Translations under genes and position numbers: made by a program
Assembly: GCA_002269645.1 (NCBI GenBank)
Contig: NIVC01000085.1
Coordinates: 620,001 to 684,000 of the forward strand
DNA length: 64,000 bases
DNA from: Macrostomum lignano
Lineage: Eukaryota
Reading direction: 5' to 3'
The notes under the pieces: generated by a model
What the model was told of the DNA's origin: nothing
Seen by the model: only the letters and a program-made list of their open reading frames with translations
The model's database searches: none
Part shown: piece after piece, positions 8,741 to 54,264 of the stretch
Position numbering within the stretch: position 1 is the first letter of the stretch
How the letters are laid out: each line of letters starts with the position of its first letter

Positions 8741-8744
<4 letters not shown>

Positions 8745-26660: not shown

Positions 26661-27274
26661 TAAGTTTAAGGGTGCAGTAGGTTGTTCAGTAGCGGTTGTG
26701 ATTGATGAGACTTGGTAATGCGCAGTTCAGAAGGCAGTTGAGAAAATTTGTTTGATCACGCTAGTTAAGTTTGGCTCCTGCGACGTCGTTGTAAAATACT
26801 TGATGATCTGCATGTATGCTAGTCGTTTACTCTTAGATAGTAATTAGTTCATTCAAAGCAAATAAGAAAGAAAAAAGAAAGAAGCTTTATTTGTTAATTA
26901 TTATTTCTAAAAAATGATTGTGCTTTTATTTCGGTTAGAAAAAATAATGCATTGCACATGAATTTTACTAATAGATCTATAAAACTTTACTACCGAAAAC
27001 TGTTTGCATTAAGTTATTTCGTTTAATTATTATTGTCATACATTTATGACAGAATGGTTTGTTACAGAATGTAAATTGTCAAAAGTTTTATGTGCCCCAC
27101 TGGTAGCTATTCTAAGCGTTCTCATTGGTTGATAGAAGCATACTACCAATCTTCGCCCCCCGATGGGGGACATCTGGATAGAATCCTTGTTCTTTACAAA
27201 TAAAAAATAGACAGCGAAATAAAGCTTTCATAAAAAAACAACAGACATTCCTTCTAAAAACAAAACATCCCAAG

Positions 27275-27700
27275 ACAGCAAGCATCCTCAGACAGCATTC
27301 AAGCATCGATCCCCAAATAGCGAAATCCTCCAGACTGCAAGCGTCCCCCAGATAGCAAGCATCCCCCAGATAGCAAGCATTCCCCCAGACCCCAGATACA
27401 TGTAGTAATCATCCCCCAGACTGCAAGCAACCCCTGATAGCAAGCATCTCCCAGATCGCAAGCATCCCACAGACTGCAAGCAACCCCTGATAGCAAGCAT
27501 CTCCCAGATCGCAAGCATCCCACAGACTGCAAGCAACCCCTGATAGCAAGCATAACCTGGATACAAAGAGACCTTATAGATATCTAGCAACCCCCTCTTA
27601 GATAGCAAGTACCCTCCACCCCCCAGTAGCAAGCATCCTTCCGATAGCAAGCATCCCCTTGATAGCAAGTATCCATCCTTAAATAGCAAGAATCCACCAG
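27275..27700. repeat. variable ~17-21-bp tandem array (GATAGCAAGCATCCCCCA-like)
   Basis: Direct inspection; reverse-complement array at ~42690-43060. Confidence 0.9.
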
Positions 27701-27859
27701 AGAAAGTAGCTAGTGCAACAATTTCCTTAGCTTTATAGTGGCTCCTTTTGTTTGGCATGACTTCTTTTATGTTTGAAACGGTGTCTCTTTTATCTTTAAA
27801 AAGGTGACTCTTTAATTTGATTTAATTTGATTTATTTAATTTGGTTTGACATGATAGCT

Positions 27860-28460
27860 CTTTAATGTTTGACATGGCTGCCCTTTTACGTTTGAAATGT
27901 TGTCTCTGTTATATTTGACATGGTGGCTCTTTTATGTTTGACATGGTGTCTCTTCTATGTTTGACATGGTGGCTTAGTTGTTTGACATAGTGGCTCTTTT
28001 ATGTTTGACATGCAGTCACGTATATTTTTGACATGGTGGCTCTTTTATGTTTGACATGGTGGCTCCTTTATGTTTGACATGGTGTCTCTTCTATGTTTGA
28101 CATGGTGGCTCTTCTATGTTTGACATGGTGGCTCTTCTATGTTTGACATGGTGGCTCTTTAATGTTTGACATGGTGGCTCTTAGATGTTTGACATGGTGG
28201 CTTAGTTGTTTGACATGGCGGCTCTTTTATGTTTGACATGCAGTCACGTATATGTTTGACATGGTGGCTCTTTTATGTTTGACATGGTGGCTCTTAGATG
28301 TTTGACATGGTGGCTTAGTTGTTTGACATGGCGGCTCTTTTATGTTTGACATGCAGTCACGTATATGTTTGACATGGTGGCTCTTTTATGTTTGACATGG
28401 TGGCTCTTTTATGTTTGACATGGTGTCTCTTCTATGTTTGACATGGTGGCTCTTTTATGT
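27860..28460. repeat. 23-bp tandem array (ATGTTTGACATGGTGGCTCTTTT) with variant units
   Basis: Direct inspection; shorter reverse-complement array at ~42500-42640. Confidence 0.92.
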
Positions 28461-28508
28461 TTAGCATTTTGTGTGTGTTTTAAGGCGTTTTAATAAAAAA
28501 GTTTTTTA

Positions 28509-28574
28509 CACTACTAAGATTCGAACCCAGGTCGCTACATTAGCAGTCCAGTCTGTTCGCATCTAGGCTATCTC
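28509..28574 (-). pseudogene. tRNA-like sequence (Ser-GCT-like) inside a composite repeat
   Basis: Minus strand GAGATAGCCTAG...GGACTGCTAA...GGGTTCGAATC carries A/B-box-like motifs and the GGACTGCTAA anticodon-arm string of tRNA-Ser(GCT). No complete cloverleaf. Confidence 0.55.
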
Positions 28575-31500: not shown

Positions 31501-31922
31501 TGTTGTTGGGTATATTCCATTTAGTTTTAACATTAATACTTTCATCGATTTGAAACGTCTTGTACGAGCTAATTTGCTACCGCCTATTGGGGTGGTTGGT
31601 CGTTCAAAGTGGAGATAAGCGCAGGTGTGCATACATTTCACTGAATCTTACCTTACCAGTGCAACTGATAGCCAAAGCTAGATTGAGTAGATTTTGTTTA
31701 GAAACCCAATGCACACGGTGCTCTCTTACATGAATGCTACTGGCCAATCAGAATGGGATTAAATCTACCATATTTCTAGAGCCTTGTGATTGGTGTTAGT
31801 GGAGCGTAATTTGGAAGTCATGTTGTAGCAGTCCTAAGCCTGCCGAAACGAGGGTGAAAGCAACGATGTCTGCCCGCCAGCAAAAGTTGTCTATGGCCCC
31901 AAGTGGGCACAAAGAAACTATA

Positions 31923-32113
31923 GGCCGTATGCAGAAAGCTTAGTCCAGACTAGCTAGTCCGGACTTGGGTAGTTCAGTCTATAGTCTATGGTCTAGCTAG
32001 CCTAGTTCTGCTACAGTAGACTGGTCTAACTTTGTGTTTCTGCATACCAAATCCAAGTCTAGACTAGCTTTTCAAGACCGGACTACCCTAGACAGAGCTT
32101 TCTGCATACGGCC
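31923..32113. mobile_element. MITE, PIF/Harbinger-like TIRs
   Basis: 18-bp perfect TIR GGCCGTATGCAGAAAGCT / AGCTTTCTGCATACGGCC, 191 bp, non-coding. TSD not clear. Confidence 0.7.
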
Positions 32114-32261
32114 CAATGTGTATATTTTGAGCTAATATTAGCATTAACATGAGATATTAACATTGTATCACGCTGGCGCGCGTTAGATGCACGATTTACT
32201 GTGCGTCTAATATAGGTGTCTATGGCAATTTTCTATCTGAGTAAAAGCAACAAGCGTGCGT

Positions 32262-32738
32262 CTAACGCGTGCGTGTAATGCACGGAAAGTGAGTACAAAT
32301 GTGGATACAAATCAACGTGGCTGGAGCAAAGTATTCGCCATTCCTCTTGCGAAGTGAGCCATAGAAGTATCGCAATAGACTGTCGATCTCGCGCGGTGTA
32401 GAAGTCGCCAAATCACGCTCAACTGACGGATGGTTCTCCATGAAGCTCTGCAACTTACCGACATAATATTCGGTAGCCTTTGTCACACTTTTACTAGCAG
32501 CGGTTTCCTCGATTTCGGAAACGAGCTGTTCCAATTCAAGTAGTTCAGCTTCTTCGTCAGGTATCTTCTTGAAAAGTGCCTCCAGAAGATCCTCCTCTTC
32601 TCGATCAATTGCCGACTCCGGTAGATTATCAGGCTCGTTCAGAATGTCGTCAATCTCATTGGTGGACAAGCCGGAAATCATTTCGTTCGGAAATTTGCTC
32701 AGATTCAGAAGTCTGACTTTAGTTGGTGGCTCAGCCAT
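32262..32738 (-). pseudogene. Crypton-type (DUF3504/KCTD1-like) tyrosine recombinase N-terminal fragment
   Basis: KATEYYVGKLQSF...EIDSLLRYFYGSLRKRNGEYFAPATLICI matches the Crypton N-terminal ELDxxLxxFYxxxRKxNGxxYxPxTL pattern; the catalytic domain is absent. Confidence 0.75.
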
Positions 32739-33071
32739 ATTCTCTCACAAGTGATTTTAATTTAACAGCTTCTTATTCCCTTCTTCGCAACACTCAATCA
32801 ACTTGCGTGCCTTTCACGCATTTTTGTCTATGGTTAAGACAAATTAACTGAGCGTGCATCTAACGCGCCATCTAAAGTATTAAGCCAACGTAATACAATG
32901 CAACTCATACATTAACATGAGGTAAAAATTAGATATATAGTCCATTGACAAGTCTTTCGATTTCTCACGCGGTATACCTTCTGACCTTAGTTTGATTGAT
33001 TGAAGTTAAACTGAACGAAGAACAGGCATAGATAGGAGTTGAGATACCTCACTGGCATATTCTCGATGTGA

Positions 33072-33407
33072 TCAGGTAAATTCTCCGCGCGTAGAAACTT
33101 TTAGTTTGCGAATATGCAATTCAGTTTGCTTAATCGTCGACTTCCGTTTACTTTCTTGCTCCACATGATGTAGGCCAGCTTCTTCTTCGGTCAATTCACG
33201 AAACAGGTTTCCAACGTGATCTTCCGGTGTAGGATTGCATAGTTCCTCATCAATTAGCCTCTCTTGCTTATCCGTCAGCCCTGTCCATTGACCGATTCTG
33301 TCGACATGGTCCCGAGGATCGAGATGCGTGATGAAATCGAGCTCATCTGAGCTCAATCTACTAATTTCGTCTTCGCGTATTGAAGAATAACGCAGCATAT
33401 TCGACAA
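33072..33407 (-). pseudogene. second Crypton-like N-terminal fragment
   Basis: Acidic N-terminus followed by KRKSTIKQTELHIRKL, paralleling SKSVTKATEYYVGKL of the first fragment. Confidence 0.5.
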
Positions 33408-33635
33408 TCAGTAAAGGAAAAAAACACGATGAATTCTTCTTTCTAACATGACTTCAACATGACTTAATATGACAGGTCTCGAGTGCTTAGGCCATAGACA
33501 AGTCAAGAAGAAGCGGGCGAGAAATGAAGCCAATAGCTTACTTCAAATGGAATTAGACCATAGAATGGATTCAGCGGGCGTAAAATGGTATTTCTCGCCC
33601 GCTGCGTTGGCAGGCTTAGATTGGCTACAATACTA

Positions 33636-33730
33636 ATATAGTTAGGCTGTCTTGGGCAGAAATGAGCGAAAAATTTTGCTTCGCGCCTCGTCTGTTTCGC
33701 TCATTTCTGCCCTCAACAGCCTAACTATAT
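33636..33730. repeat. 36-bp inverted repeat (hairpin), possibly a Crypton terminus
   Basis: ATATAGTTAGGCTGT...GGGCAGAAATGAGCGAAA vs TTTCGCTCATTTCTGCCC...ACAGCCTAACTATAT, about 3 mismatches. Confidence 0.85.
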
Positions 33731-33964
33731 TTATATATTACTGAAAATGCTAAAAATCAGTAGCTATAATTAAGTCAGAACTTGATTCTGTCAAGTATAG
33801 TGCTTCTTCACAAATTTTTCCAGACCCAAGTTTTAAAGAAAAACTTTTCCTATTGCTCTGTATTTATTTGTAAATTATACTGCAATTATACTGCTGACTT
33901 TACTGATTTAGATATTGTGTTATTTTTTCATCGCAATTATTGGCGAAACGCGATCCTATCCTAG

Positions 33965-34369
33965 AAGCACTTTGCAGAAAAGTCGCGAGGCGAAACGGCG
34001 TCGCCAAGAAGAGACCCCTGAAGCTCGGGAGCAGCGACTACAAAAAGAGCGGCTGAGTAAGCAGCAGAGTAGAGCTGCTGAGATGCCGGCAAAGAGGGAT
34101 GCGCGTCTTCAGGCTCAGAAAGAGAGCGACGGGCGCCGCAGGTCGTCTGAGGCGCCGGCCGAGCGAGATGCGCGCCTGGAAGACCTGAAGGAGAGGTCCA
34201 AACGCCTCAGATTGGATGAAACACCCGCTGAGCGCGAGGCGCGCTTGCAGGCCGAGAAGCAGCGCTCAAGCCAACGAATAGCAAGCGAAGACCAATCCCA
34301 GCGGGAAGATCGGCTGCAGCAAAACAGAATGCGCTATCGGGCATCCCTCGAGCTGGAAAGGAGCTCCAG
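33965..34369 (+). CDS. exon: charged ETPxxRExRL coiled-coil repeats (splices in frame to the OTU exon)
   Basis: ETPEAREQRL / EMPAKRDARL / EAPAERDARL / ETPAEREARL; donor AG|GTAAGA at 34369/34370 (phase 2). The 5' boundary is uncertain. Confidence 0.7.
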
Positions 34370-34688
34370 GTAAGATTTAGCTTTAATTACATTTCAACAG
34401 TCTTTCTTATTTTGGACGAAGAAGTTTATTCGACAATCAACATAGACTGCTAATTTTAATGAAAAAAATTGCTGCCATAAAATCGAGATCAATTGCTTCC
34501 ATGGTCATTTCCAGTCATTTCCGTGCAATAATTTTACTATGTGTCTCCCATCTGCTCATGGTGTCATTCCCCAGCTGCCTTGATATAATTTCCTTAATAA
34601 TGTTCAATTTTTGTTGGTGAACTTTATAAGCAATAAGTATCCAACCCAAACGCCAAAAACTTTGCCACAGCTCTGCTCATCTGCCCAG

Positions 34689-35120
34689 CATGCTGCCGGT
34701 CAGTGCAACGCAGGTCTCTAGAGTGAGCGGGGATGGCAACTGCTGGTTCAGAGCGATTTCCAATCAGCTGGTTGGCACCCCGATCTACATGGGCCACAAG
34801 GAGCTGCGAAGGACCATCGCTGCCAGAGCGAGGCCACTGCTGGAGGCACAGACGGCGACAATAGAGGCCATCGGCCTGACGGTGGACGAGTTGATCGCAG
34901 ACACCGAGAGATCCGGGGTCTACGTGCATGAGCACATTGCGCCCATGCTGAACCAGCTGCTGGACGTGGACTACGCCATCTACCAGTACGCTGATGCCGG
35001 GCGGCTGCAGCTGGTGCAGGAGGTGGCGTCAGCTGTGAGGCCTGCGGCGGCTGTCGTGTGGCTCCTGTACAACCGGCACGGCCAGCACTATGACTCCCTG
35101 CGCATTGCACCGCAAGTCAT
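34689..35120 (+). CDS. exon: OTU-like cysteine protease (deubiquitinase fold)
   Basis: VSGDGNCWFRAISNQL and GQHYDSL catalytic motifs; the acceptor CCCAG|C gives AG+C=Ser in frame with the upstream exon; possible donor GTATGT at 35121. Confidence 0.82.
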
Positions 35121-36480
35121 GTATGTTTATTGTTTGCTTCTTATCGCAACGTGTTTAGGCTAGCATTAAGATAAAATGGTACTTCCAGGAAATTTTAAAT
35201 GTGTATTGATATGTAGTCTGGCTTGTGGGTGCGCGTGCACTTAGATGTGCACGTCTGGCTTGTTTGGGGGTTGGGGCTTTGCTCTGCACCGTGTGCGTGC
35301 TTAGGGTGGTTACACCCACCCAACTTTGTCATTAAATATATTGGCGTGAGCCAGTGAGGTCTCCTCACGATTTGTTATTCTCTGAAATTCAACCCACGGT
35401 CTTACAGCTATTATTTTGTAATATTAACAGAGCATTTTTATTTTTATGTTAAAGATTTTCTAACTTTTAAGCCCGGAAACATTTTTAAACTCTATTATTA
35501 CAGTATGAGACTTGTGCATTCAATTACAAACTATACTCCCAATCATCAGTGCCGAGTACTCGGTCAGATCTGCTGTGCCGCCTTCAGTGCCCGTTGTTGA
35601 GCCGCAAGCTGGACTGCCCGATTCCAGCGCTGCACCGGCGTTCTGTACTGACTCTGGGTGAGTGGCCCAATTTTCAGCTTATCGTGGCCATTAGGATCTT
35701 TACAATAGGGTCTTTAATCGTTGCTAATAGGGTCTTTAATAGCCATCTAGGCTGTGAAGAAATGTGGTATTTAAATTTCCAAGGCCTTTTAAAATCTGTT
35801 TTAGCTGTTTACAGTAGAAGGACCATGGGGGTGTATTTCAAATACACACATTTTTCTTTTGTCTTGATCTCCGGAAAATATTCAACCAATTGCCATCAAA
35901 ATCCAGAACATGGGCTAAAATTTTCCGCTTTATTCGATGAAGCAACTCCGAATATCACGAAAAATCGGCATCGTCAAGATATTCAACGATTCTCCTCAGG
36001 GGGTCCGGTGGCAAAAACCACCAACATTGGCAAATTTTTTCTATTCACAAAATTTCATCATGAAACCACATCGGCTCAGAAAACTATGCATATCAGTTGG
36101 AAAGGCCTTTGTTCTCAGCATCCCAGGAACTAGGGTCCCCTTCATCACCATCTGGAGCATCGGTGGCGACCGTCGGGACCTTCAACAAAAGAACCCGATC
36201 GGCATCGCAGAGACGGCTGCGTTCCCAAAACTGAAATGGAAGAATCCTCTCCTCTTCTGCATGCAGCATTCAGTCAGTAGACATAGTCGGTGAATGAAAT
36301 GGACGACGGCGACCCTCTAGGTTGACATGTAGACATACAAGCGACCTTCGGGACCTTCAACGGAGTGCCACCACGCGGCCCCGACTAGCTGGCACCCCCA
36401 ACATCGTGATTTTTCTATCAAGGCACCAAACCAGGCATGTCTGCATATTATAATATGCTTTTGCACCGTGTTAAATTGGA

Positions 36481-37072
36481 CAGACAATTGCTTCCCAATG
36501 GCAAGCCTATAGCAATAGGCACGTACTACAATTCTACCAAGAGTTGCACGGGCACCTGCAACAGGATGTTCCGCACATCCGACTGCAAGCGACAGTCCGA
36601 CTCAAGCGAGAAGGCAATCTTCTCCGGCGGCATACTCAACATAGCAGCTGTGAATGCCGCTGCTATCTGGAGACTGGCGCACCCGGAGCTCTGCGCCTCG
36701 CCGAACTATCGCAACGAGTTCCAGCGCAACGCAGCTGCGCAACTTCTGCAACCTCTGATCGAGGAGCGCTCGCAATCGGCCGCTCTTCTTCAGAATCTGT
36801 CCAATCATCACCGGCTGATGTTCCAGCTCGCAGGTTGTAGAATCAACGACGAGCAAATGAAGGAACAGGCACGCGAAGCGGCGGCTGTGGTGTCAGTTGG
36901 TGGCAGAAAGCGCTGTGCAACATGCGCGAGACAAAAGTCAAATGATGAGAAGCGTGCCTTGAGTGCAACAACAAGGAAGTGTTGCGTGTGTGACGAAGGA
37001 ATTTGCCGAAGACACACTGCAATGGAAGAGACAGTGAGTCACCATTACTGCGCACGTTGTACACCAAATTAA
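36481..37072 (+). pseudogene. piggyBac transposase C-terminal fragment with cysteine-rich domain
   Basis: GKPIAIGTYYNSTK, GILNIAAVNAAAIW, RNEF..QLLQP, RKRCATC...KCCVCDEGICRRH...CARC. The usual GGVDxxDQ motif reads SCTGTCNR. Confidence 0.85.
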
Positions 37073-37134
37073 ATAGTGACAATTGACTCAGCCTTTGTGT
37101 CTATGTGTCAGTGTTCAGATCCTTCTGCTTTGAA

Positions 37135-37245
37135 TTTGCTGTAATATCATTTTTGACATGCCGTAATATCATTTTGGCATGCTGTAATATCATTTTTGAC
37201 ATGCTGTAATATCATTTTTGACCTGCTGTAATATCATTTTTGACA
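37135..37245. repeat. ~21-22-bp tandem repeat (GCTGTAATATCATTTTTGACAT) x5
   Basis: Direct inspection, downstream of the transposase stop. Confidence 0.9.
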
Positions 37246-37842
37246 AATTAAATATATTTTATATTATTCAGTCGCCAGTTAAATCTGTAACTCTCCAATT
37301 TAACACGGTGAAAAAGCATTGTATAATATGCAGACATGCCTGGTTTGGTGCCTTGATAGAAAAATCACGATGTCGGGGGTGCCAGCTAGTCGGGGCCGCG
37401 TGGTAGCACTCCGTTGAAGGTCCCGAAGGTCGCTTGTATGTCTACAGGTCAACCTAGAGGGTCGCCGTCGTCCATTTCATTCACCGACTATGTCTACTGA
37501 CTGAATGCTGCATGCAGAAGAGGAGAGGATTCTTCCATTTCAGTTTTGGGAACGCAGCCGTCTCTGCGATGCCGATCGGGTTCTTTTGTTGAAGGTCCCG
37601 ACGGTCGACACCGATGCTCCAGATGGTGATGAAGGGGACCCTAGTTCCTGGGATGCTGAGAACAAAGGCCTCTCCGACAGATGGACCCAGATTATTGAGC
37701 CAATATGGATTCACCATAAAGGTTTATACAGTATAGTGTTGTTTTTCCTTGCCACCAGTGTCTTCGACAAGAATCGTTGAATATCTCGACGATGCTGACG
37801 TCGGATGACTTTGAAAGTTAATTTGTTGGAAAGAGGGGGGAA

Positions 37843-40800
37843 AAATCAACGCGCACCACAAGCACTGGGGCAGCAAAGATACCAACACTAGAGGAGAGGA
37901 GCTTCTGGCCCTCATCTCTAACACAAACCTCATGCTATGCAACCGCGGCAGCACTCCTACCTTTAATAATGGCAGATGGACCGAGGTCCTTGACGCCACA
38001 CTCGTTACCCCAAGACTCTTTGACAGAGTTGAGGAGTGGAGAGTCTGGTCTGAGGAGCCCTCCCTGTCTGACCACTGCTTTATCGCCTTTAACATCGCGG
38101 ACACTAAAACCCAGTCTCCGATCACTTGGAAGCGCAATATCCGCAACACTGATTGGGCGGCCTACAAGGCTGCCCTTGATCTGCACCTGCAGGAACTCAC
38201 GGACTTACGTCCGATTGAGACCTGCGAGGATGTGGATCATATGGCTGAGACGCTGACAGGTTGCATTATTGCAGCCTACGAAGCGGCTTGTCCTGCTCGC
38301 GCCTACAAAGGCAAGACCTCGGCGCCGTGGTGGAACCCGGAGCTGGGGAAACTCAGGCGGAAGGCCAAAAGCCTTCATCGCCGTGCCATGAAGACCGGAA
38401 ACCGGAGGAAATGGAGCTTTTCCGGCAAGCCTCCCGCAATTTCAAATCTGAAGTGCGCAAGGCCAAGGAATGTAAGTGGCGCCAATTCTGCAATGAATTG
38501 GATCAAGACAGACCTACTTCTAGGCTTGTCAAGGCCCTTACAATGGACAAAATGTCCAAATAAGCCATGATCAAAAAAGATGATGGCTCTCTTACTAAAG
38601 ACCCTGAAGAAGTGCTTCAGCATATGCTCAGCACATTCGTCCTGAGGGTACCTACTGCTAGACCGGAGCCCAACCATTCGATGGATGGAGCCACCCTAGC
38701 GGCGGGCATTGTCACTGAAGACCTAATCGCTCGTGCCTCTATCGCTGGGCCTCTATCCAGCTGGGATACGTTCCCAAATGCTGGACTGAAGCTCGGGTAG
38801 TCTTTATTCCCAAACCTGGGAAGGGTGACTACCAAAGCGTCAAGGCCTTCCGGCCTATTAGCTTAACGTCAGCAATGCTTAAGCTCACTGAGAGGCTTAT
38901 TCTCTGGCGGCTGCTCTCCTGCGAGCTGACAGCGATGCCCCTCAGCAATAATCAGCACGCCTTCCGTACCGGGAGGTCGACTGACAGCGCCCTGCATGCG
39001 ATTGTCGAGAAGATTGAACGGGCGGTACTGGGTGACGGTTACGCCCTGGCTCTCTTTCTTGACATTCTTGGCGCTTCGACAACGTTATCTTTGAAGCGTT
39101 TCAAAGGGCCCTTCAAAATCGCCCTTTGAAATCGACATGATCTCCAACCGTACGGTCACTGCCCAACTTCTTGGGCAAACTGCCTCCACCAGAGTCTGTA
39201 AGGGTGGACCCCAAGGCGGATTCCTCACCCCGACGCTCTGGAACCTGGTCATGGACGCTCTTCTGAGTGACTCCCGACCCGAGCCCGTCTTCAAAGTCGG
39301 GTATGCTGATGACGTCACGGTCATTTTGGCAGGACCGTCTCCCAGCACGCTCAGGGATCTGATGCAGAGCTTTATCCGCAAAGCAGAATCCTGGGCCAAT
39401 GACAATGGTCTGGAACTCTCTGACCCTAAAACCGTTGCCATTATGTTTACCAGCAGAATACGCTGGAACATACGTCCTCTGCAGCTCTACGGCAGAGATA
39501 TTGCCTTCGCGCACCAGACCAGATGTCTCGGGGTCATACTTGACCACCGGCTCAACTGGTCCTTCCACGTGAAAGCAAAAGCCAAGCGTGCCTCAGCCAT
39601 CCTGGCCCAGCTCCGACGAGCACTTGGCACTTCTTGGGGTCTATCCCCAAAGCGGCTTTGGTGGATCTATACTTCCGTAGTTAGACCTGCCATTACGTAC
39701 GCCTCTGTTGTCTGGTTTAGCGCTACTCAGGTAAAAAGCCATGCAGATCTGCTCAACACGATCCAAGGCAGAGCGTGTAGGCTCATCTGCAACGCCACCA
39801 GGTCCACGCCCTTTGCTGACATGTGGGCCTTCCTTAATCTACCGCCTCTTGACCTCTTCGTCAGGGGTGAGGCGGCTAGAACGACGCGGCGTCTAATTGA
39901 TGCCGGCGTCAAATTCATTTACATGAGAGCACCTGCTAAGCGGAACCTTGTCCCGCATAGCGACCTGTGCCTCAACTTTCTCAACGAGTGTCAAGCCAAT
40001 CGCGTCTTCACCGATGGCATTGCCTCAACCCTCAACTTGAGACAGCGCTACTCCGTAGCTATCGACTCACGCGATAACATCAATGACCAATGGAACCCTG
40101 GTGAGCTTCATTGCTACACCGATGGTTCTAAGCAGTCAGCCAACACCGGCTTTGGTGTTGGAATCTTTCTGAACGGGATGGTCATCGCTAACCACGCTCA
40201 ATACACTGGGGTCAACTCCAGTGTTTTCCAAAATGAAGTTCTGGCCATCAGCTCCTGCACTGCAGAGCTTCTCGCCACTGGCGTTACTGGTAAGAACATC
40301 ATTTTCCATTCGGACAGCCAAGCTGCCTTGCATGCCATCAGTGGCTGCAGCACCAACTCTGCTACAGTCCTCGACTGTATCAAACTCCTCAACGTGTTGG
40401 GTTCCGCCAACAAAATTACCCTTAAGTGGGTTCCGGGGCATGTGAGGATCCGAGGAAATGAGTTGGCTGACACCCTTGCAAAAGTTGGTGCCTCCGGCTC
40501 CTCTCTCGGCCCCGAAACTCTTGTCCCGATTCCTGGCTGTGTCATCGACTCGCGCATCAAAGCGTGGATCAGGACTCAGCACCGCTCGACTTGGGCGAAC
40601 CGCACGAACTGCAGGCAATCCAGAGGCGCTGTCCCTCAGCCCTCTCACCAGCTCCGGGAGCTTCTTTTGCGCCTCTCACGCAGAGACATCCGGTCTGCCA
40701 CCATGACCCTCTGTGGTCACGGCTGCTTCTCCAGGCACCAGTACCCTGCAGGGCAACGCCACCAACGCCACCTGTAGTTTCTGCAACTCAGGTGACGAAA

Positions 40801-41116
40801 CCGCTGAGCATTTCGTCAGCATCTGTCGCGCCTTCACGCGGGCCAGACTCACTTACCTCGGGCCACACACATCTATTACTGAAGCGTGCAAACCCGAAAA
40901 CTTTAATCAGCTCATGCGCTACCTTCGGGCCACCCGCAGGGCTGAACTCTCCTTTCCAGAGAGCACTATAGCTGCTGGCGACACTGGGGGACCTCCCTGG
41001 GCGGCGCCAACCCTCCGTCCATAGCGACGCGTCGGCCGTTCAGGGACTAGCGGAATGGGCGTCCGCGCCTTCCCGCTGTGTCCCCTCCGGGACAGCCCTG
41101 CAGCTAAGTCAAAGTC
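37843..41116 (+). mobile_element. 5'-truncated LOA-like LINE (second subfamily), degenerate ORF2
   Basis: 9-bp TSD AGGGGGGAA at 37834-37842 and 41117-41125. Starts at INAHHKHWGS of APE; GYADD, HCYTDGSK, GNELADTLAK, CSFC..EHFVSIC; internal deletion near 38740; ends CCTGCAGCTAAGTCAAAGTC. Confidence 0.9.
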
Positions 41117-41372
41117 AGGGGGGAATTTTGATCCAAATGGTGGACTTTTACGAAAATCGGTTATTCGGTTTGCGAGCTATGGTGAAATTGGTTGTGTGTA
41201 TTTGTAATACACCCCATGGTCTTTCCCCATGGGGAAAAATAGCGTGGTCTTTCTACTGTTTAGTGTTTGGTAAGCTGTGGGGCAGTTACTAAAAATCTTT
41301 CTTAAAAAAATCCATAGCTTTTGGGCTAGCCAGCTGCGACAGCCTACCGACTCACAGCTGCCTGATGTCAGC

Positions 41373-41413
41373 ATGGCATCTGACATGTCGGATCTCTCAG
41401 ATGAGGACACTGG
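41373..41413 (+). CDS. Mab-21/cGLR-like gene, putative exon 1 (MASDMSDLSDEDTG)
   Basis: ATG with donor GG|GTGAGT; phase 2 matches the acceptor of exon 2. Confidence 0.55.
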
Positions 41414-41594
41414 GTGAGTGCTTGTTTATTATTTTTGAACCTCCTTTACAAGCTAAGTGATCTTTTATAGCTTCGATTACACTAGAAAATTACCGTTTAA
41501 ACTGAAAGGCAGCTATTCGATGTTAAAATATTTTTATTTTTGATTTAAAAATCACTTTCCTGTCTTCTTGCTTTTACACTGACGCAGAGCCTCT

Positions 41595-43090
41595 GTGAGA
41601 TATATTTCAGAAAAAATGGTTCAACCGATTTTCTTTAAACTTGCACCATTCGATCAAAAATTTTCCTGTGACATCTTTGCTTGACATGTATCTTGGATAA
41701 GAAATTTATCAATGCTGAAGGAATTAAATATTCGAAAAACGTGCTTTTTTGCATAGGTCAAGCAAAATTTTCAACTTCATATGCATTGTAACAACGCTAG
41801 AGAAAAAACTGACTGACTGAATTTTGATTCTGATGAAGATTGCATCACAACAAGTTGAAAACGGTGTCGAAGCATAGCACCAGACTTGATTGAAATTGCG
41901 TAACCATATTGCTAACTTTAATTGAAACTGATGCTGGCTGACTGAGAAACTGATTATGTCATAATTTTTACTCTAACCAACATGGTGTAAGATTGAATTA
42001 TAAGGGCAACAATTGGGGGCCGTAGACCAGCGGTCTAGCGCAGCTGCTCTGGTGTGCCAGCGACCCAGGCTCGATTCCAAGTGCAGCCACATTAATTTGG
42101 GGCTGAATTGGAATCTCGGCTTCGCTCTGCTCGTGCAATTAACGGCCTTGAGAGCCAACCCCCCAAGGCGCAGTGAAGTGTACATGCCTAACGATAAAAT
42201 AAAGTTAGGGCCGCTGTACACTCCTGTGTGAGTGTGTGCCTGCATACGTGTCCGCGCGCTTGGGCAGTTATGCCTCTCGCCGGTTGTTGTTGTGCCTATG
42301 TCGCTTAAAGTGCGCCAGGGTGCACACAACCCCCTGCCTCTAATAAAAAGGGCAACAATTCATGTTCTCCAATTGACAAGAGATAGCCGAGATGCGAACA
42401 GACTGGACTGCTAAAGTAGCGACCTGGGTTCGAATCTTAGTAGTGCGAAATATTTTTTATTAAAACCATAGAAACACAAAAATGAAAAACAAAAGCGCCA
42501 CCATGTCGCCATATCAAACATAAAAAGAGCCACTACGTCCAGCATAAAAGAGCCACCATGCCAAACATGAAAGAGCCACCATGTCAAACATAAGAGAGGC
42601 ACCATTTCAAACGTAAAAAAGGCGTCATGCCAAACAAAATGGAGCAGCTATAAAGCTAAGGATATTGTTTCACTAGCTACTTGTTATCTGGTGGATGCTT
42701 GCTATTTAAGGATGGATGCTTGCTATCAGTGGGATGCTTGCTATCAGTCTATCAGTGGGATGCTTGCTATCGGAAGGATGCTTGCTATCTGGGGTAACTT
42801 GCTCTTGGGGGGGGGGGGTGGAGGGTGCTTGCTATCTGAGAGGGGCTTGCTAGCTATCTATAAGTATTCTTTGTATCCAGGGATGCTTTCTATCTGGGGG
42901 ATGCTTGCTATCTGGGGGATGCTTGCTATTGGGAGGCAAGAGGCTTGCTCTCGGGGGGGGGGCGGTACTTGCTATCTTGGGGGGAGGGGTTGCTATCTGG
43001 GGGATGCTTCTTGCTATTGGATTTGGGGGTACTTGCTATTTTATTTGGGGTGCTTGCTATTGTATTTATTTATTTATTTGTTTTTATTGT
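41595..43090 (+). mobile_element. unclassified composite repeat, copy B (carries a SINE insertion)
   Basis: Inverted homolog of 27275-29015; tRNA-Ser-like head at 42380-42445, then 23-bp and ~18-bp arrays. Confidence 0.75.
42015..42347 (+). mobile_element. full-length tRNA-derived SINE (family A)
   Basis: 13-bp TSD AAGGGCAACAATT at 42002-42014 and 42348-42360; A/B boxes; ends CTAATAAAA. The empty site is visible in copy A at ~28595-28610. Confidence 0.9.
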
Positions 43091-43129
43091 ATTTATTATA
43101 TTTATGCTGACACTACATCCTGACAGTGT

Positions 43130-43500
43130 TATAGCGCGAAGATAGCGGCACAGAAGCTGCAATGTCTCACTGATAATTGAGTTGACGGTCGATACTCCGA
43201 TGCGATGGGTGATGGAAAGTAGATGTTGGCTGTCACCATGTCCTATGAATCGCAATGTGAGGGCCAGTCTTTTCTTGACAGAAAAGGCTTGGGGGAACTC
43301 GTGTCTAGATTTGTAAGTGGCTTTTCAAGGCTCCATTCGCAGAAAGCAACGAAAGTAGTCCGGTTCCATTTGCTGAATCTCATTGAACAAGATGCTGTGC
43401 TCTCCTTTTACAATGCGATGGAAAAGAAACTCTCGAACCCAAAGCCGCATCTTTTTTGTGACGGCGGCGCAGCAGCAACAGCACAGCAGCAGATACAGCA
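43130..43500 (-). pseudogene. PIF/Harbinger transposase N-terminal fragment
   Basis: RLWVREFLFHR..KGEHSILFNEI..EPDYFRCFLRME and RLALTLRFIGHGDSQHLLSITHRIGVSTVNSIISET match Harbinger N-terminal/HTH motifs; contains a stop. Confidence 0.82.
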
Positions 43501-43899
43501 AATGGTGGAAGCTTCATTTCAAACGTCAGATTTGCAAAGATAGAAGATGGATATAATTTATTTATACGGGCGCCTTGACCTGCTTTATTCTGATACTCTT
43601 TTAAATACAGAAATCATCAGTACAGCAACCACGCTCTGCATACTGCTCCTGAGCAGTGAGTTGTTTACCGTATGGTTGATTAAGCAATAAATGGAACGTA
43701 GCCCCCTCCTCTTCCTTCCTTCTGTCTCTCGGCTAGTTGCATTCAACATCAGTAGATTGCAGAGTGAATGCGATTAATCACCAGAAAAAGTTTGAGTGAT
43801 CACATGAAAAACTGGAGTGATTAAAAATATGGGCTGATCATCAACTGAAACTTCGTGTGACCACACTAATTTTGGACTCGTCTGATGACAGTTTGAATG

Positions 43900-44560
43900 A
43901 ACCTTAAGAGTGGTGATCAGTCACTCAAAAACTCCCACTAACAGACTGCAAGTATGAGAACAGAATTGGTGATCACTTACTGTTGCGGGCTCCTCTTCTT
44001 TGTATGGCAAGTCCGTAGAGCTCGTCTCCTCAATGTAGTCTTCCTTCGGAGTTGTCTCCTTGAATTCTGAAGTCAGTCGAGCATGAGAGCAATTTAAGTG
44101 AACGCAAAAATTCAATCCGTGGACAACAAATATTCTTCGAAATCAGTAATCAGAATCAGAGATAACAAAGTAAATTCTATAACAATAACGAGGTCCTACA
44201 GAAAGAGCGTGTTCTTCTAGAAATAATGGAATCAGAGTCGTATGCCCTTATCGGTTATTCTAGGGTACCAAAATCAATCAAATCAATAATCGTCAAAGGG
44301 TATCGGAATCGGTCCGCAGATCCCGTCCAATCCCTTAAGAATAGGGAGGCCTCAAATTCAATAACTCAATAGAAATCAACGGATCAGTAACGGTTGGCAA
44401 TAACACAGCTCTCCATAATCAAATAACAAAGACTTCAACAAAAGCTTACCAATTGGAATTTGTCTCCCTCAGAGATGTAGCCTCGTTTGGCTACTCTAGC
44501 AAAGCTCAAGATTTTTTGAGGCTGCTTCGAGTCTGAAATTTCAGCTCAGATTATTTACAG
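43900..44560 (-). repeat. unclassified interspersed repeat, copy 2
   Basis: Homologous to 880-1600. Confidence 0.65.
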
Positions 44561-44899
44561 ATATTTCCAGGACGACTAGTAGTCCTTGATATATTTGTAC
44601 CCACTTTGAGTCGAACTTGAGCTAAAACCGGTTTTTTGATGAGGTCAAGAAAGGAGTTTTACAGGTGGGGTTTTTGAATAGAAAGGGAAAGACTTGGCCA
44701 GGTTAACATTTACCATATTTGAAAATTCTAAAAATACATGTTGCGAACCAGTTTCTTTAACAATAGAATGGTCACTCGCTGTTTTTGTGATATTACTGGT
44801 ATTACTAAAAACTATGAAGCCTATTTATTAAATTATATTCATATTTTTATCTTAATTCATTTATTAGTCAGCTATGTTTGGAGATCTCTAGCTACATCT

Positions 44900-45980
44900 T
44901 CTTTCCTCCATCGGGCTTAAAAAGGTACAATTATTTAGTAGCAGTCTTACTCTATAAAACCAAGACAAAATTCAGCAAACAAATCTTTACAAGTGTCGCT
45001 ATTCATGACGAATCAAAGCGTTTGATGTACAAATTCTTTTATGATATGAAGCAGCAATACAAGAATGAAATCAAACTGTTGTATACCGACACAGACAGTT
45101 TGATCCTGAACACTGACACTAAAGAATTTTATCAACGTCTTTGACACAGAAGGACTTGTATGACTGATCTGAATACCCTAAATCATTTAAGACGCATAAT
45201 CTTAATCAAATGTTTGACCCTCGTAACAAGAAAGTAATTGGGAGAATGAATGAAGAGAATTGTAGGGACATCATAACCGGATTTGAGTCTGATTTTTTAT
45301 GGTATTTGATACCTCATATTTCACAAAAAAGGGTGTTTCCAAACGTGTAGATAGGCCGATGAAGTAAATGAATCCGCATATGGAGATGCTCTGTGTCACT
45401 ATAAGAGAACTATCCATGATTTCTTGAAGCTGCAGTCCAAGAATCACAATATTAGTACGATTCAACAGAAGAAGATTGACGTGTCAGGTGCTGAAAATAA
45501 ACGATTTGCCCTTGATGACAACATAAATATAAAGTCTGCCCTTTGGTCATTGAAGATTGCAGCAAATTGGTTTTTAATTAAAAAATATTTTAAAAATTCT
45601 GAAGGGGTCTTTACGAGAGATGAACTTACTAAACCGCCCACTACTCTTAACCTAACCAACACTCTTACACACAAGATAAAAAGCAATGAGGTTTCATAAA
45701 CTTTGACACTTTTGACAAACCAAGTTCTCCTTGGGTTTGCTCGGGTGATTGATTCTGACCGCAACCACAAGTACGAGTACTACGCTCGCACAATTTCGAT
45801 AGCTATGGAACAGCTCCACCGGAAGAATTAAGGAATTGCCTGAAAATGTAAAAAATTTCCGCTCAGACTTTATCCTTTAAGAGCTTAGCAGCGAAATCTG
45901 CGGTGAGCTGTTTATGACTCTTTTACATGTATTGGCCAAAACCCGAAAGAGCTACAATTGGAAATTGTTCTAGGGTTTAC
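44900..45980 (+). pseudogene. second Polinton/Adintovirus relic (PolB C-terminus + protease)
   Basis: AIHDESKRLMYKFFYDMK..KLLYTDTDSLI (PolB motif C), NKKVIGRM, ENKRFAL; protease NFDT..WV, FDSYGT, ICGEL; many stops. Confidence 0.85.
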
Positions 45981-46316
45981 ATGTTGATTTCGGTTTTTAA
46001 AAACATTTAGATCAGTACTTTTGTGGTGGGAGATGGGATTATATATAAATGGATTTTTTTAGACGATTGTCCTGGGGGTTGCCCATTGTTATCCCTATTC
46101 GATGAGCAGTGCTAAGTATTTACTCAATTTTACATACTCGCACAAGAGCATCATTATGTATAAATAGATGTTAATTTTTTGCTGTCAAAGACAGGTCGGG
46201 GGTAGTCGTCTATTTTATCGCCCATATTTAAGCAGTTGTTTTGCATTTGCATTTGCATATGCATACATTTTACATTACATTTTGATCTAAGGGGAATGAG
46301 CTATTTTTTACTCCAG

Positions 46317-46705
46317 GTCCTCAGACGATTCCAAGCAAGACAAGCGCCTGAGCGAGGAGCTGCATCGACTGCTCAGCGATGCGGGATTCACCAAGCAGAG
46401 AGCAAAGTGTCAGCAGAGACTGGCTGACTGGCTGGAAGAAGTCGCTCGAGTCCTCACACAGGATGGCAATCGCAGGCAAATGACGGGCAGCTACGCAGAG
46501 GGCTGGGCCAACAGTCTGGTGCAAGTGAACGGCAGGACAGCTGCAGACTCGGACATTGACTGGACTGTGCTGCCTGCTGGGCAGCAGTTCCATCTGGAAG
46601 GTGGCTGCGATGATCGAAAAACTTGGTGGCATGGACAGAACCCTTGCAGAGACGCCACTCGGCTGCGGGTCACGGAGGGCCACGCACAGGTGGCAGTTGG
46701 TGCAG
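46317..46705 (+). CDS. Mab-21/cGLR-like gene, exon 2 (NTase active-site motifs)
   Basis: Acceptor TTTTTTACTCCAG|G, donor G|GTGAGT; open frame with MTGSYAEGW...DSDIDW. Confidence 0.85.
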
Positions 46706-47635
46706 GTGAGTGAGGCTGGGTTCATCATCAGAATGCTGAGATCCGCATGCAACTGGAAGCCCATTAACTTTGATCAAATTTTAAATTCGCAACCGAGTGG
46801 CGCCCAGCCTCCAGCAGCTTCTGACTGCGAATGTCGGCTTAGGTGCTGAAACAAGCGGCAGGTGAAATTGAAAAGAAAACTCTGATGCCAGCTGGTTGAG
46901 TCGAACAGGTGTTATACTTTCGGATCTCAGTGTCTTGTGTTGTCCGCCCAGATAGGTACTTTTTGATATCCCCCAGATAGTCCAAGCATCTTGAAGTATC
47001 CGGTTCGGATATTTCAAGCTGCTTTGAGTTCTTCAGAGTACTTGCAGTCTCCCCCAGAAGTCACACGCAGGTTGATATATCCGGTCGAAAAACTAAGGTT
47101 TGCTTTGCGATATCCGGATTGTGAAGTCCGGGTCAATAAACGAGTTGTCAGTTAAAATATTTTCTAAGCAAAAAAGCAATAAATACAAAATTATCAAAAA
47201 ATTGCAGGAAGCAGTTTTTGTTTTTATTTTCAATCACTTAGTTAAATAACGTGCGTAGTCAGTTGATATTAATTTTAGTTCAATTAGTTTAAATCACCAG
47301 AATATTGGTGAAGCACTTCCACTTTAGGTTCGGCCTGCGTCCTGTATCGAATCAGATGTAATCCATTGACGCAGCGCTTTAGGCCAGGTACCTGGTAGAC
47401 GTTTCGTCTCACGCATCTGCGCACTAAAACTGGAGATCGCAAAGCAAAGCCTAACACCGGGCTATCGGGTTTTAAATTCACAGGCTTTTATATTAGCGTG
47501 CATAAGTATTTAAAAAAGTATTTTTATAGTCAGGAACTCAAAATTCCCAACCAGTCAAGAGAAGATCTGTTGTTTCAAACCAACTCATCTTTTTCACACA
47601 CCACAAAGCCATTCTCCGCTCACTGCGCTCTGCAG

Positions 47636-49233
47636 GCAGCCAACCTGCAGTGACAGCCACGGCGTGCGGTGTGCGGCCTGCACAGGACACGTGCCATGCG
47701 ATCCAGTGCTGCAGCAGTTTCTGTAAGGACAGGATTAAAAAACTGACTGCAAACAGGAATGATGTTCACCTCGTTAGGGCGACCAGACCGAGTGAGACCA
47801 ACGAGCTCAGAGTGAGCTTCAGCTTTCAAGAGAAAGACATCATGAGACAGCTGAGCACAGTCCAGGGCCAGCTGTTCACACTCATCAAGTTCATCTTCAA
47901 GAGACACTTGCCGCTCACTCTGGACACACCTGGGCTCAAGACCTACCATGCAAAGACTCTGCTCTTCACAATGCTGGAGAAGCATGGAACAGATCCTGAA
48001 ACTGAGGCTTGGCAGCCCCACAATCTGATCGCTCTGCTCAACGAGTCTCTCGACATGATGCTGAGCTTCATCGACTCGAGCAGCTCGCCCGATGAGTGCA
48101 TGCCGCACTTCTTCATGCCCGACGCTCCGCTCTACTTCAAGAGCGCTGGAATCGGCGGCGACTTCTACAACACGAAAGCGAGGGTTCGAGACCGACTTTG
48201 TGAGCTGAGAAGCGACATCGGCGGAGTGGTCGAGCAGCTGAGGAGACTCGTGAGACCTCTGCAGTCAGAGAAGTTCTACTTTCACCCGTTCACTCTGCTG
48301 CCTCTGACAGCGCCGCCTGCTGTCACGGAGATCAGGGAAATAACTCATATGTTTGACTTTTACATCAAGTTCGCAGACGTGTACAGTGTGGTGCACCAGT
48401 GTGTGAGCGAGCTGCAGTCGGAATCGAGCGACAGAGACACCCTGATGAGGCAGCTCAGTCTCCTTCATCAGCTGCAGCGGTGCAAGTGCGCCGCCCTGTG
48501 CATGACCGCCATGGCGCATTTAAAGTTCGGAGAATCTGAGGAGGCTGAGAGACTCGCGATGGAGCTGCAGAGACATCAGGTTGAGTCAGGGTTGAAGCCA
48601 AATGATATTCGAGACGAGAGTACCAGGTACCAGATCAAGATAATACTGCCAGAAAACCCAGACTGGGCGTGGAGGTTCTGCCTCCCCTGCGACTCTCCGC
48701 CTCGCTTCCCATTCCTTCCCGAGTTCACACAGACTCTGTTCACAGCCAGACTGTCGCAGCCTCTCTCCTCCCACCTGTACGTGAACTTCCGCTGCCTGAG
48801 CTGGAGTCTCCAAGCTGAGCTGCTCCGCAATCGTGCACCTGCAATCGCATTCGATCATTGGATTGAACAGCTGCTTGGAGACCCGGACTTGGAGGAGCTG
48901 CTCACTCTGGCTCACTACAGCGACTGCCGCAAGCACGTGGAGCTCAGCCTGCAGCAGATGGAGATGATCGAGAAAGAGAGACGCGTCGCCATGGAGACGC
49001 AGGACGAGGAGAAGATCGGCTGGGTCAGGAAGAAGCGGTGGCGAGTTTCGAACTGCAGCGGCAGCGACAGCGGCGCCCACCGCAGCAGGGAAGATGAGGA
49101 GCGGAGGCTGTGGGCGAGGGCGAGGCTGCGGCGAGACGGGGCCGACTTGGGGCGCCTGGTCGCCATGGAAACTGCAGCGGAGCAGAGAGACAGCTGGACT
49201 CACGCCAAGCTCAATCGGATGAGACTGCAGTGA
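47636..49233 (+). CDS. Mab-21/cGLR-like gene, exon 3 (third Asp, Mab-21 C-lobe, helical extension)
   Basis: Acceptor CTCTGCAG|GC in phase 1; QDTCHAIQC, DVHLV, LRVSFSFQEK, LKTYHAKTLLF, W..NL, CMPHFF are typical Mab-21 motifs. Confidence 0.88.
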
Positions 49234-54178: not shown

Positions 54179-54264
54179 CCAACTGTAGTTTGTCTGTTCT
54201 CACCTTGATGACGCTTTTCTGTGCCTCTGGTATTCTATTGCCCTTGTGTTTTCCTCCTTTCCCC

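Follow-up and report, generated by a model that had tools for sequence, protein, structure and literature searches.

The 64,000-nucleotide stretch of the Macrostomum lignano genome analysed here (the window) raised the question of whether it carries an intact gene for a cGAS-like receptor (cGLR), and of where such a gene begins. The initial annotation had described an uncharacterised protein of 675 amino acids encoded by three exons, in which a Mab-21-type nucleotidyltransferase (NTase) was followed by a C-terminal extension. Our reading, to which we give a probability of about 0.7, is that the locus belongs to a cGLR subfamily, specific to Macrostomum and heavily expanded, in which an ankyrin (ANK) array is joined to a cGAS-fold NTase and to a C-terminal domain without known relatives. 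The features of the locus are as follows.

19588..23647, + strand: probable true first coding exon, with the start MGQNLNC..., 34 ankyrin-like units, canonical ankyrin repeats and the end ...LLDLSGAG
19664..23010, + strand: coding tandem repeat (99 bp, 33.8 copies, 79% matches; Tandem Repeats Finder)
21129..21137, + strand: single frame break in the repeat exon, at the A7 homopolymer GCTAAAAAAAGCG (three-frame translation)
23648..46316, + strand: intron of 22.7 kb, filled with transposon ORFs
41373..41413, + strand: exon 1 of the initial annotation, MASDMSDLSDEDT, an unsupported candidate
46317..46705, + strand: exon 2, with the N-terminal spine helix, beta-1 with M-T-G-S, the 20-residue activation loop and D-S-D-I-D-W
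47636..49233, + strand: last exon, with the third catalytic Asp, the remaining NTase core, the Mab-21 C-lobe, the C-terminal extension and the stop codon
48235..49230, + strand: family-specific C-terminal domain of ~330 aa (AlphaFold2; conserved columns)

Exon structure of the locus

The join of 41373-41413, 46317-46705 and 47636-49233 that had been proposed gives 2028 nt, that is 675 codons and a stop codon with no internal stop, and GT/AG is present at each of its borders. The second and third of these exons, which form a 662-codon open frame, are real: they were recovered by tblastn with five paralogs (46315-46707 and 47629-49230), and their GT/AG borders and all of their splice sites are conserved with a syntenic M. 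lignano paralog locus (L001). The stop codon and the C-terminal tail are common to the window and to the paralogs P0001 and P0003.

The proposed gene span was too short, however, since it left out the 4-kb ankyrin exon at 19588-23647. The N-termini of P0001, P0002, P0005 and P0008 mapped to about 19588-23647 by tblastn, and blastn showed synteny with L001 over the whole locus, the 5' and 3' flanks included. The donor of the ankyrin exon (GG/gtgagt, phase 2) is conserved with L001 and phase-compatible with the acceptor at 46317, and the join yields an open frame. Pfam matches were found both in 19588-21129 (Ank_4, 84 bits) and in 21180-23647 (Ank_4, Ank_2 and Ank, with 167, 149 and 135 bits, respectively). 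The paralogs and the synteny show the ancestral first exon, as predicted from sequence, to be this ankyrin-repeat exon of ~1,350 codons, 22.7 kb upstream. The ankyrin exon and the core exons together predict a protein of ~2,015 aa, and the corrected gene model matters because the Mab-21 part alone leaves out two thirds of it. The window copy itself may produce the full ~2,015-aa protein, a shorter core-only isoform, or nothing.

The 99-bp tandem repeat encodes divergent 33-aa ANK units with the consensus VQTVADQTKRDDCCINAAESAASKGHWEVVKFL (unit extraction and per-position entropy). The window has 34 of these units while the annotated paralogs have at most 8, and among syntenic paralogs the number of tandem units varies between 0 and 34. 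At the frame break two nucleotides stand in place of a codon, the repeat register is kept, and the 33-aa unit is restored across the break with one X; either one nucleotide has truly been lost here or the long-read assembly is in error at the homopolymer. The intron that follows is 11 times longer than that of L001 (22.7 kb against 2 kb; blastn), and Pfam identified in it RVT_1 and RNase_H at 39137-40777, Exo_endo_phos_2 at 37932-38570 and OTU at 34690-35163; a sense-strand LINE is among its transposons. The 54-nt mini-exon of the paralog was not found in the window intron by blastn of L001 or by peptide search, and it is also absent from several paralogs.

These observations could indicate that the paralog in the window is in decay or no longer functional, split by transposable elements, with a frame-shifted ankyrin exon and with exons 2 and 3 as an intact relic. 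The expanded intron with its LINE and other transposon ORFs, the 1-nt deletion in the repeat exon and the loss of the mini-exon would fit such a copy, as would a dN/dS of 0.63-0.88 against the syntenic paralog and the fact that the homolog search found no database protein identical to the window product. However, the ~6 kb of coding sequence contain just a single lesion, and its position in an A7 run is that of a classic long-read assembly error. Exons 2 and 3 contain no stops, while a neutral copy at equal divergence would be free of stops only ~2% of the time (P ~0.02). All of the splice sites are intact and conserved, the lack of the mini-exon is shared with several paralogs, and a high dN/dS is usual in expanded immune receptor families. 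We consider decay of this copy to be somewhat unlikely.

Predicted catalytic core and C-terminal domain

GSYAEG, D-I-D and QDTCHAIQC, on which the initial annotation had based its active site, are all present in the window frame. The M-T-G-S motif is located at 46480-46491 (G-S codons 46486-46491), D-I-D at 46552-46560 (D codons 46552-46554 and 46558-46560), and the codon of the third Asp, within QDTCHAIQC, at 47686-47688. The spacing of these elements (M-T-G-S, X20, D-I-D-W, X65, D) fits the published cGLR motif, h[QT]GS-X8-20-[DE]h[DE]h-X50-90-[DE] (Li et al. 2023, PMC9980059): D-I-D-W is found 20 residues past the S, which is the maximum of the 8-20 range, and 65 residues separate the third Asp from D-I-D, inside the 50-90 range. 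Neither neighbour of the third Asp (Q-D-T) is hydrophobic, in departure from the strict 'h' positions. The third Asp, D148 in core numbering, aligns with the catalytic Asp of the D-h-V-x-A-F strand of lophotrochozoan cGLRs that have Pfam Mab-21 NTase matches.

The fold was modelled on P0003, which is 83% identical and has the same motifs, as a proxy for the window protein. In the AlphaFold2 model (pLDDT 81.4, pTM 0.83) a strand at residues 62-64 is followed by G65 and S66, D87 and D89 open a strand at 87-101, and the third Asp lies within a beta strand. A structure comparison with cGAS had been suggested as a check, and it gave a clear result for the proxy: at least the top 40 Foldseek matches in the PDB were cGAS, with a probability of 1.00 and over both lobes (350-390 aligned columns, TM 0.50-0.57 normalised to cGAS). 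The family profile likewise found cGAS among PDB sequences at 5e-7. The predicted Mab-21 C-lobe was recovered by Pfam Mab-21_C (PF20266) at about 47920-48132, with 27.3 bits against a cut-off of 24.1. The Pfam Mab-21 NTase model (PF03281) had no match to the window protein, to P0003 or to other close members, and hhalign against one coral cGLR aligned the C-lobe only; the equivalence of the N-lobe therefore rests on the predicted structure, the secondary-structure placement and the short motifs. The HMMER alignment to cGAS also bore out the absence of a cGAS-type zinc ribbon, as the family has 'STVQG' where cGAS inserts about 12-17 residues and the zinc thumb H(X5)CC(X6)C is missing. As had been proposed, the locus is an invertebrate gene of the Mab-21/cGLR fold, in which the G-S loop and the three acidic residues are all preserved.

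The C-terminal extension differs from its first description as a helical, possibly TPR-like segment of ~250 aa. The AlphaFold2 model made from the window's own translation (pLDDT 86, pTM 0.81) gave a domain of ~330 aa with mixed helix and beta structure, in which four helices are followed by a small beta sheet, further helices and a charged tail of low confidence, and the beta sheet carries the conserved motifs DWAWRFCLPC and YVNFRCLSWSLQAELL. Foldseek found no relatives of this domain in the PDB at E <=0.001 (best E = 0.37), its best matches being non-significant alpha-solenoids, and no Pfam match, TPR included, was found in it. Since neither a PDB fold nor a Pfam family matched significantly, the extension is not demonstrably TPR. 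Its fold is predicted with confidence and its conservation extends through the entire Macrostomum expansion, so that it offers structural and ligand studies of orphan cGLRs a defined target.

With the core exon structure, fold, conserved motifs, family membership and synteny of the locus in hand, a mode of action can be proposed. As the paralogs and the synteny show, the ancestral protein consists, in this order, of the MGQN... start, ankyrin-like units of 33 aa in variable number, canonical ankyrin repeats, a cGAS-fold NTase core in which a T-G-S activation loop is followed by a D-x-D...D triad predicted to bind metal, and the ~330-aa C-terminal domain. By homology with characterised cGLRs, the enzyme would be inactive at rest; binding of a ligand or partner would reposition the G-S loop, the core would condense NTPs into a cyclic di- or oligonucleotide, and this product would switch on a receptor further downstream. 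Since the DNA-binding zinc thumb of cGAS has no counterpart here, binding would most plausibly fall to the ankyrin array, to the C-terminal domain, or to both. We infer the expression and catalysis of the window protein as well as its ligand, product and receptor.

The family and the remaining readings

A word-index search found 43 homologs, all from M. lignano, the best of them 84-86% identical and most with N-terminal ANK repeats. A deep profile search gave 704 matches, 87 of them below 1e-30, and the named strong matches were again all from M. lignano. Identity within the family falls to 20-40% overall, and all five catalytic positions are retained in 90 of 121 members, the window included, with G-S retained in nearly all of the 121. 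A fused caspase domain (Peptidase_C14, 89.9 and 96.4 bits) occurs in two paralogs, and the second as well as the third acidic residue is missing from each of them. Planarians and cestodes, which are sister flatworm lineages, lack STING.

The description of this gene as uncharacterised does not extend to its family, which is listed as ANK-fused cGLRs in Table S2 of Li et al. 2023 (PMC9980059). Five M. lignano members (Table S3, #89-93) were purified in that study for a screen with dsDNA and poly I:C, and the best match of the window, PAA68676.1 (P0001, 84% identical), was among the screened cores (PMC9980059). None of the 15 actives reported came from a flatworm (Li et al. 2023, PMC9980059). 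Only two ligands were offered in this screen, to cores that had been truncated, and its authors noted that many cGLRs seem inactive for want of the right ligand (PMC9980059). The locus adds a further member to a published cGLR family whose ANK fusion and intact active site have been known since 2023 and, with a near-identical paralog already purified and screened, it adds little new in kind to cGLR biology. Of use, besides the gene model and the C-terminal domain, are the variation in ANK units (0 to 34) and the caspase-fused members with dead catalytic residues, from which testable ideas follow on the diversification of recognition and output within a cGLR family of an animal whose relatives lack STING.

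The core could instead be catalytically silent like MAB21L1, in which case it would sense or oligomerise and signal through ANK or C-terminal contacts, or through a fused caspase, with no nucleotide messenger. The five screened M. lignano cores, for which no activity was reported, the presence of MAB21L1 among the structural matches and the absence of STING in sister flatworm lineages are all consistent with such a scaffold, and the loss of acidic residues in the two caspase-fused paralogs indicates that catalysis is dispensable for the fold to function in this family. However, selection on the active site is hard to avoid when 90 of 121 members keep G-S, [DE]x[DE] and [DE] at 20-40% overall identity, and the screen offered truncated cores two ligands only, in a study that itself pointed to missing ligands. 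A silent core is, in our opinion, unlikely.

A broader and decidedly speculative reading, which we regard as doubtful, is that Macrostomum kept and expanded a cGLR lineage of more than 100 paralogs with hypervariable ANK recognition, C-terminal sensing or effector coupling and a non-STING output. The hypervariable tandem ANK array (34 units in the window) would then allow recognition to diversify, much as the LRRs of NLRs do, a C-terminal fold of ~330 aa not described before would act in ligand sensing or effector coupling, planarians and tapeworms would have lost cGAS/cGLR and STING, and the catalytically degenerate caspase-fused paralogs would hint at the non-STING output.

The proposed first exon at 41373-41413 has no counterpart in any paralog or in L001, and it is located in window-specific, TE-rich sequence directly 3' of the LINE. 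The intron holds 627 ATG..GT phase-2 candidates including this one, 7 of them with a GTRAGT donor, and the proposed exon is therefore no better than chance. An alternative first exon transcribed from an internal promoter is possible at this position, though nothing argues for one. A 675-aa core-only protein with this new exon and a promoter inside the transposon-rich intron is highly improbable: the join has an open frame, a good GTGAGT donor and the correct phase, and the annotated paralog P0003 (659 aa) likewise lacks the ANK region, but the exon is without homology support, seven equally good and 627 looser candidate first exons exist in the same intron, and the N-terminus of P0003 is unrelated to MASDMSD....

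Comparison with known systems

The closest known proteins are M. lignano PAA68676.1 (BOX15_Mlig016402g1, P0001; #93) and PAA93208.1 (#92), both from the 140-protein screen of Li et al. (PMC9980059), which are 76-86% identical to the window protein over the core and extension. They share with it M-T-G-S, D-S-D-I-D-W, QDTC-H-A, the C-terminal domain and N-terminal ANK repeats, while the window differs by its 34 repeat units against 2-8, its 22.7-kb intron, the lack of the linker mini-exon and one frame break. The lophotrochozoan (mollusc-type) cGLRs have the same 'TGS-x-AEG...SD-x-D' block and 'PA...D-h-V-x-A-F/Y-x-C' third-Asp strand, and their C-lobe aligned to the window family at 1e-14 in a whole-library search. 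In contrast to them, the flatworm family has an activation loop 12 residues longer (X20), an N-lobe too diverged for Pfam Mab-21, and an extra C-terminal domain and ANK array.

Vertebrate cGAS shares the bilobed NTase fold over ~380 columns, the G-S loop, the acidic triad and the C-lobe helices, at 13-17% identity, while the window family is without the zinc thumb. The N-terminus of cGAS is disordered and basic, and ankyrin repeats take its place in the window family. In the coral Stylophora pistillata, cGLR cores are also joined to protein-interaction repeats, as ANK- or death-domain-fused cGLRs (Li et al. 2023, PMC9980059); the coral and Macrostomum fusions are probably independent, the coral side having been compared in sequence through one canonical cGLR. 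Finally, MAB21L1 and MAB21L2 have the same fold, and MAB21L1 (5eom) was matched by Foldseek at E ~6e-6, ranked below cGAS. The MAB21L proteins are developmental, single-copy and without extra domains, whereas the Macrostomum family is massively expanded.

Gene model and the collinear paralogous locus

All 43 homologs retrieved by word-index search came from the free-living flatworm Macrostomum lignano, the best being 84-86% identical. An ankyrin-free profile of the family, run with HMMER over 1.84 billion representatives, gave 704 matches, 87 of them below 1e-30, and every named strong match was again from M. lignano, the sole exceptions being two anonymous metagenome fragments. No deposited protein was identical to the product of the window, so we read the window gene as a putative unannotated paralog or homeolog, or else as one from a very close relative.

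The initial annotation described a 675-aa cGAS-like receptor (cGLR) encoded by exons 41373-41413, 46317-46705 and 47636-49233. When joined, these three segments give 2,028 nt (675 codons and a stop) with GT/AG at every border. The tblastn search of paralogs against the window located exons 2 and 3 at 46315-46707 and 47629-49230, in agreement with their proposed placement, whereas the 41-nt exon 1 had no paralog match and the model is incomplete without an ankyrin-repeat (ANK) exon. Most relatives are 800-1,100 aa long, and some exceed 2,000 aa; their ankyrin repeats precede the segment "SDDSQQDRRLSEELHRLL...", with which exon 2 starts. The N-termini of the paralogs mapped to 19588-23648, on the same strand as exons 2 and 3. 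This block opens with MGQNLNC (MGQNQS in the paralogs) and ends with ...LLDLSGAG at a donor (GG/gtgagt) whose phase is compatible with the acceptor at 46317. The conserved start (19588-19610) resembles an N-myristoylation signal, which, if true, would anchor the protein to a membrane.

Other features of the window
4996-9880, minus strand: LINE-like element (endonuclease, RT, RNase H) and, after it, a gag-like ORF
11881-12534, plus strand: SAP-domain ORF
13587-15993, plus strand: second retroelement, with an RVT_1 match and downstream ORFs
19664-23010: 99-bp coding tandem repeat, 33.8 copies, encoding 34 divergent 33-aa ankyrin-like units
21129-21137: single frame break, 2 nt in place of a codon within an A7 run, 33-aa register kept
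34690-35163, plus strand: OTU-protease ORF
37932-40777, plus strand: sense-strand LINE within the large intron of the cGLR gene
50489-53557, 54246-54698, 56761-57638 and 58595-59661: large CT-rich minisatellites whose strand skew is extreme (GC skew near -0.5)
56124-56783, minus strand: 219-aa ORF with a predicted transmembrane stretch and a sub-threshold PRIMA1 match (19 bits, cut-off 38.6)

Comparison of the window with L001, the syntenic M. lignano locus holding the gene of protein P0008 (GCA_002269645.1), showed that the two are collinear, with identities of 94% in the 5' flank, 82% in the start-codon region, 89% in both the ANK exon and exon 2, 91.5% in exon 3 and 90% in the 3' flank. All four splice sites are conserved. 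However, the large intron measures 22.7 kb in the window instead of 2 kb in L001, and it is packed with transposon ORFs, namely the sense-strand LINE (endonuclease, RT, RNase H) and the OTU ORF. The 54-nt linker mini-exon of L001 gave nothing significant in the window by blastn (word size 7) or tblastn (PAM30); it is also missing in several paralogs.

The number of ankyrin-like units is highly variable within the family, with 34 in the window, essentially none in L001 and at most eight in annotated paralogs. Canonical ankyrin repeats follow the 34 units (Pfam Ank_4, 167 bits; Ank_2, 149 bits). The repeat exon of the window also differs from that of L001 by the frame break at 21129-21137, which is the one lesion in this ~4-kb exon and the sole frame break in ~6 kb of coding sequence. 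It may be a typical long-read assembly error or a real lesion. Because of the mapping of the paralog N-termini, the synteny with L001 and the lack of support for exon 1, the most parsimonious gene is 19588-23647 joined to 46317-46705 and 47636-49233, encoding ~2,015 aa, provided that the homopolymer lesion is an assembly artefact.

The window as a whole carries a heavy transposon load, and its CT-rich minisatellites yield long spurious proline/serine ORFs. L001 lacks the array at 50.5-53.4 kb, its flanking sequence aligning with 49242-49456 and 53449-53804 of the window. The ORF at 56124-56783 may belong to an unrelated gene for a membrane protein, as its final exon.

Active site and predicted fold of the core

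The catalytic motifs reported in the initial annotation are present: GSYAEG (G-S codons at 46486-46491), D-S-D-I-D-W (46546-46563) and QDTCHAIQC (Asp at 47686-47688). The Mab-21 check by HMMER was positive for the C-lobe (Mab-21_C, 27.3 bits, cut-off 24.1) but not for the NTase N-lobe, for which Pfam gave no match even at E <= 1. A single-sequence search of PDB sequences matched cGAS weakly (E = 0.22), and when the family profile was compared by hhalign with a canonical coral cGLR, the C-lobe alone aligned (probability 45%), establishing no residue equivalence in the N-lobe, which lies beyond the reach of these sequence-only methods (Pfam, hhalign).

The core fold was taken from P0003, a proxy protein that is 83% identical, has identical motifs and shares the architecture of the 675-aa model. 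Folded with a 25-row family alignment (pLDDT 81.4, pTM 0.83), it matched cGAS across both lobes: the top 40+ PDB matches in Foldseek were cGAS, with E-values from 1.5e-7, probability 1.00, 350-390 aligned columns and TM of 0.50-0.57 normalised to cGAS. MAB21L1 also matched, but ranked below cGAS. In the model G65-S66 follows strand 1, D87 and D89 open strand 2 and D148 lies within strand 146-155, a predicted layout that is canonical for a Pol-beta-type NTase.

The cGLR motif of Li et al. 2023 is h[QT]GS-X8-20-[DE]h[DE]h-X50-90-h[DE]h (PMC9980059). The window conforms to it with M-T-G-S, X20 (the longest spacing permitted), D-I-D-W, a second spacing of 65 residues and Q-D-T, in which the residues flanking the third Asp are not hydrophobic, unlike those of the published motif. 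The distant matches of the deep search were cGLRs of the lophotrochozoan type, which the Pfam Mab-21 NTase model matches in part, and the Asp of their "D-h-V-x-A-F" aligns column for column with the third Asp of the family. In the hmmalign census 90 of the 121 members, the window among them, keep G-S, [DE]x[DE] and [DE] even as identity drops to 20-40%, a pattern that speaks for selection acting on the active site. The assignment of the family to the cGLRs was correct.

As the initial annotation had noted, a cGAS-type zinc ribbon is lacking, the zinc thumb being absent from the family. A conserved Cys/His cluster (D-T-C-H-A-I-Q-C-C-S-S-F-C, window 47692-47724) directly follows the third catalytic Asp; it comprises C150, H151, C155, C156 and C160 in core numbering, plus C111 in exon 2, and its CC pair is conserved in most of the family. 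In place of the zinc thumb, these residues may bind a metal or form a group of disulfides.

The C-terminal extension

The extension was folded from the window's own translation of 48235-49230 with a 41-row alignment, and gave a compact, confident domain (pLDDT 86, pTM 0.81) consisting of four helices, a small beta sheet, more helices and a charged low-confidence tail. The sheet holds the conserved DWAWRFCLPC and YVNFRCLSWSLQAELL motifs. The suggestion of a TPR-like module was not supported: Foldseek against the PDB returned generic alpha-solenoid noise only (best E = 0.37, none at 0.001), and Pfam gave no match. The model is that of a family-specific fold, which occurs throughout the Macrostomum expansion. 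A mobile module shared with other domains, an idea based on the UniRef name of P0122 ("GB1/RHD3-type G domain" protein), found no support, since Pfam detected no domain in the retrieved proteins P0122 and P0134.

Interpretation and relation to published cGLRs

The best explanation for the identity and architecture of the gene is an ANK-cGLR pattern-recognition enzyme (probability about 0.7). A ligand or partner would be bound through the repeat array and/or the C-terminal domain, upon which the cGLR core would make a nucleotide messenger; for catalysis itself we put the chances at roughly even.

That the window copy is a decaying paralog split by transposons is rather unlikely. Its dN/dS against the syntenic paralog (exon 2, 0.88; exon 3, 0.67; ANK exon, 0.63; dS ~0.11) is compatible with either fast immune-gene evolution or relaxed constraint. 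At half the observed divergence, a copy evolving neutrally would have retained stop-free exons 2-3 in only ~2% of cases, and in 11% if divergence were 3%. We lean towards an intact gene because exons 2-3 are stop-free and the repeat exon has one lesion, of the long-read assembly type.

A non-catalytic scaffold is unlikely for the window core, which keeps its acidic residues; it is favoured by the M. lignano paralogs P0026 and P0050, which have lost the second and third of them (D-x-N and S/T in the catalytic columns). In these paralogs (1099 and 2111 aa) a caspase domain (Peptidase_C14; 89.9 and 96.4 bits, respectively) is fused C-terminally to a cGLR-like core and ANK repeats, which suggests a direct sensor-to-protease design that would dispense with the nucleotide signal. 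A short isoform made from the exon at 41373-41413 is highly improbable, this exon lying in window-specific sequence immediately past the LINE and being no better than chance as one of 627 phase-compatible ATG..GT candidates of the large intron (7 of 627 have a GTRAGT donor).

The preferred ANK-cGLR has published relatives, and the claim of an uncharacterised, novel gene is superseded. Li et al. surveyed >3,000 cGLRs, 13% of which carry additional domains, including TPR and ankyrin repeats, and reported none beyond Mab21-like proteins in "Nematodes and most platyhelminthes" (PMC9980059). Their Table S2 lists PAA68676.1 (P0001, the best match of the window) with Ank_2 domains. Their 140-protein screen took in five M. 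lignano cores (entries #89-93), #93 being P0001 and #92 a member of the same subfamily; activity was seen for 15 enzymes, those of insects, anemones, molluscs, hydras and corals, and many cGLRs were inactive, according to the authors probably for want of the right ligand (PMC9980059). For planarians, an absence of both cGAS and STING has been reported (PMC13563047), cestodes score 0/0 in the species table of Li et al., from which M. lignano is absent (PMC9980059), and our literature search found no report of a Macrostomum STING. Three points merit further work, namely the unexplained C-terminal fold, the ankyrin array with its 34 units, and the missing receptor. The core of the initial observation is real: the window gene adds a member to the published cGLR family, and its "TGS-x-AEG...SD-x-D" block is identical to that of mollusc cGLRs (Li et al. 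Table S3, PMC9980059).
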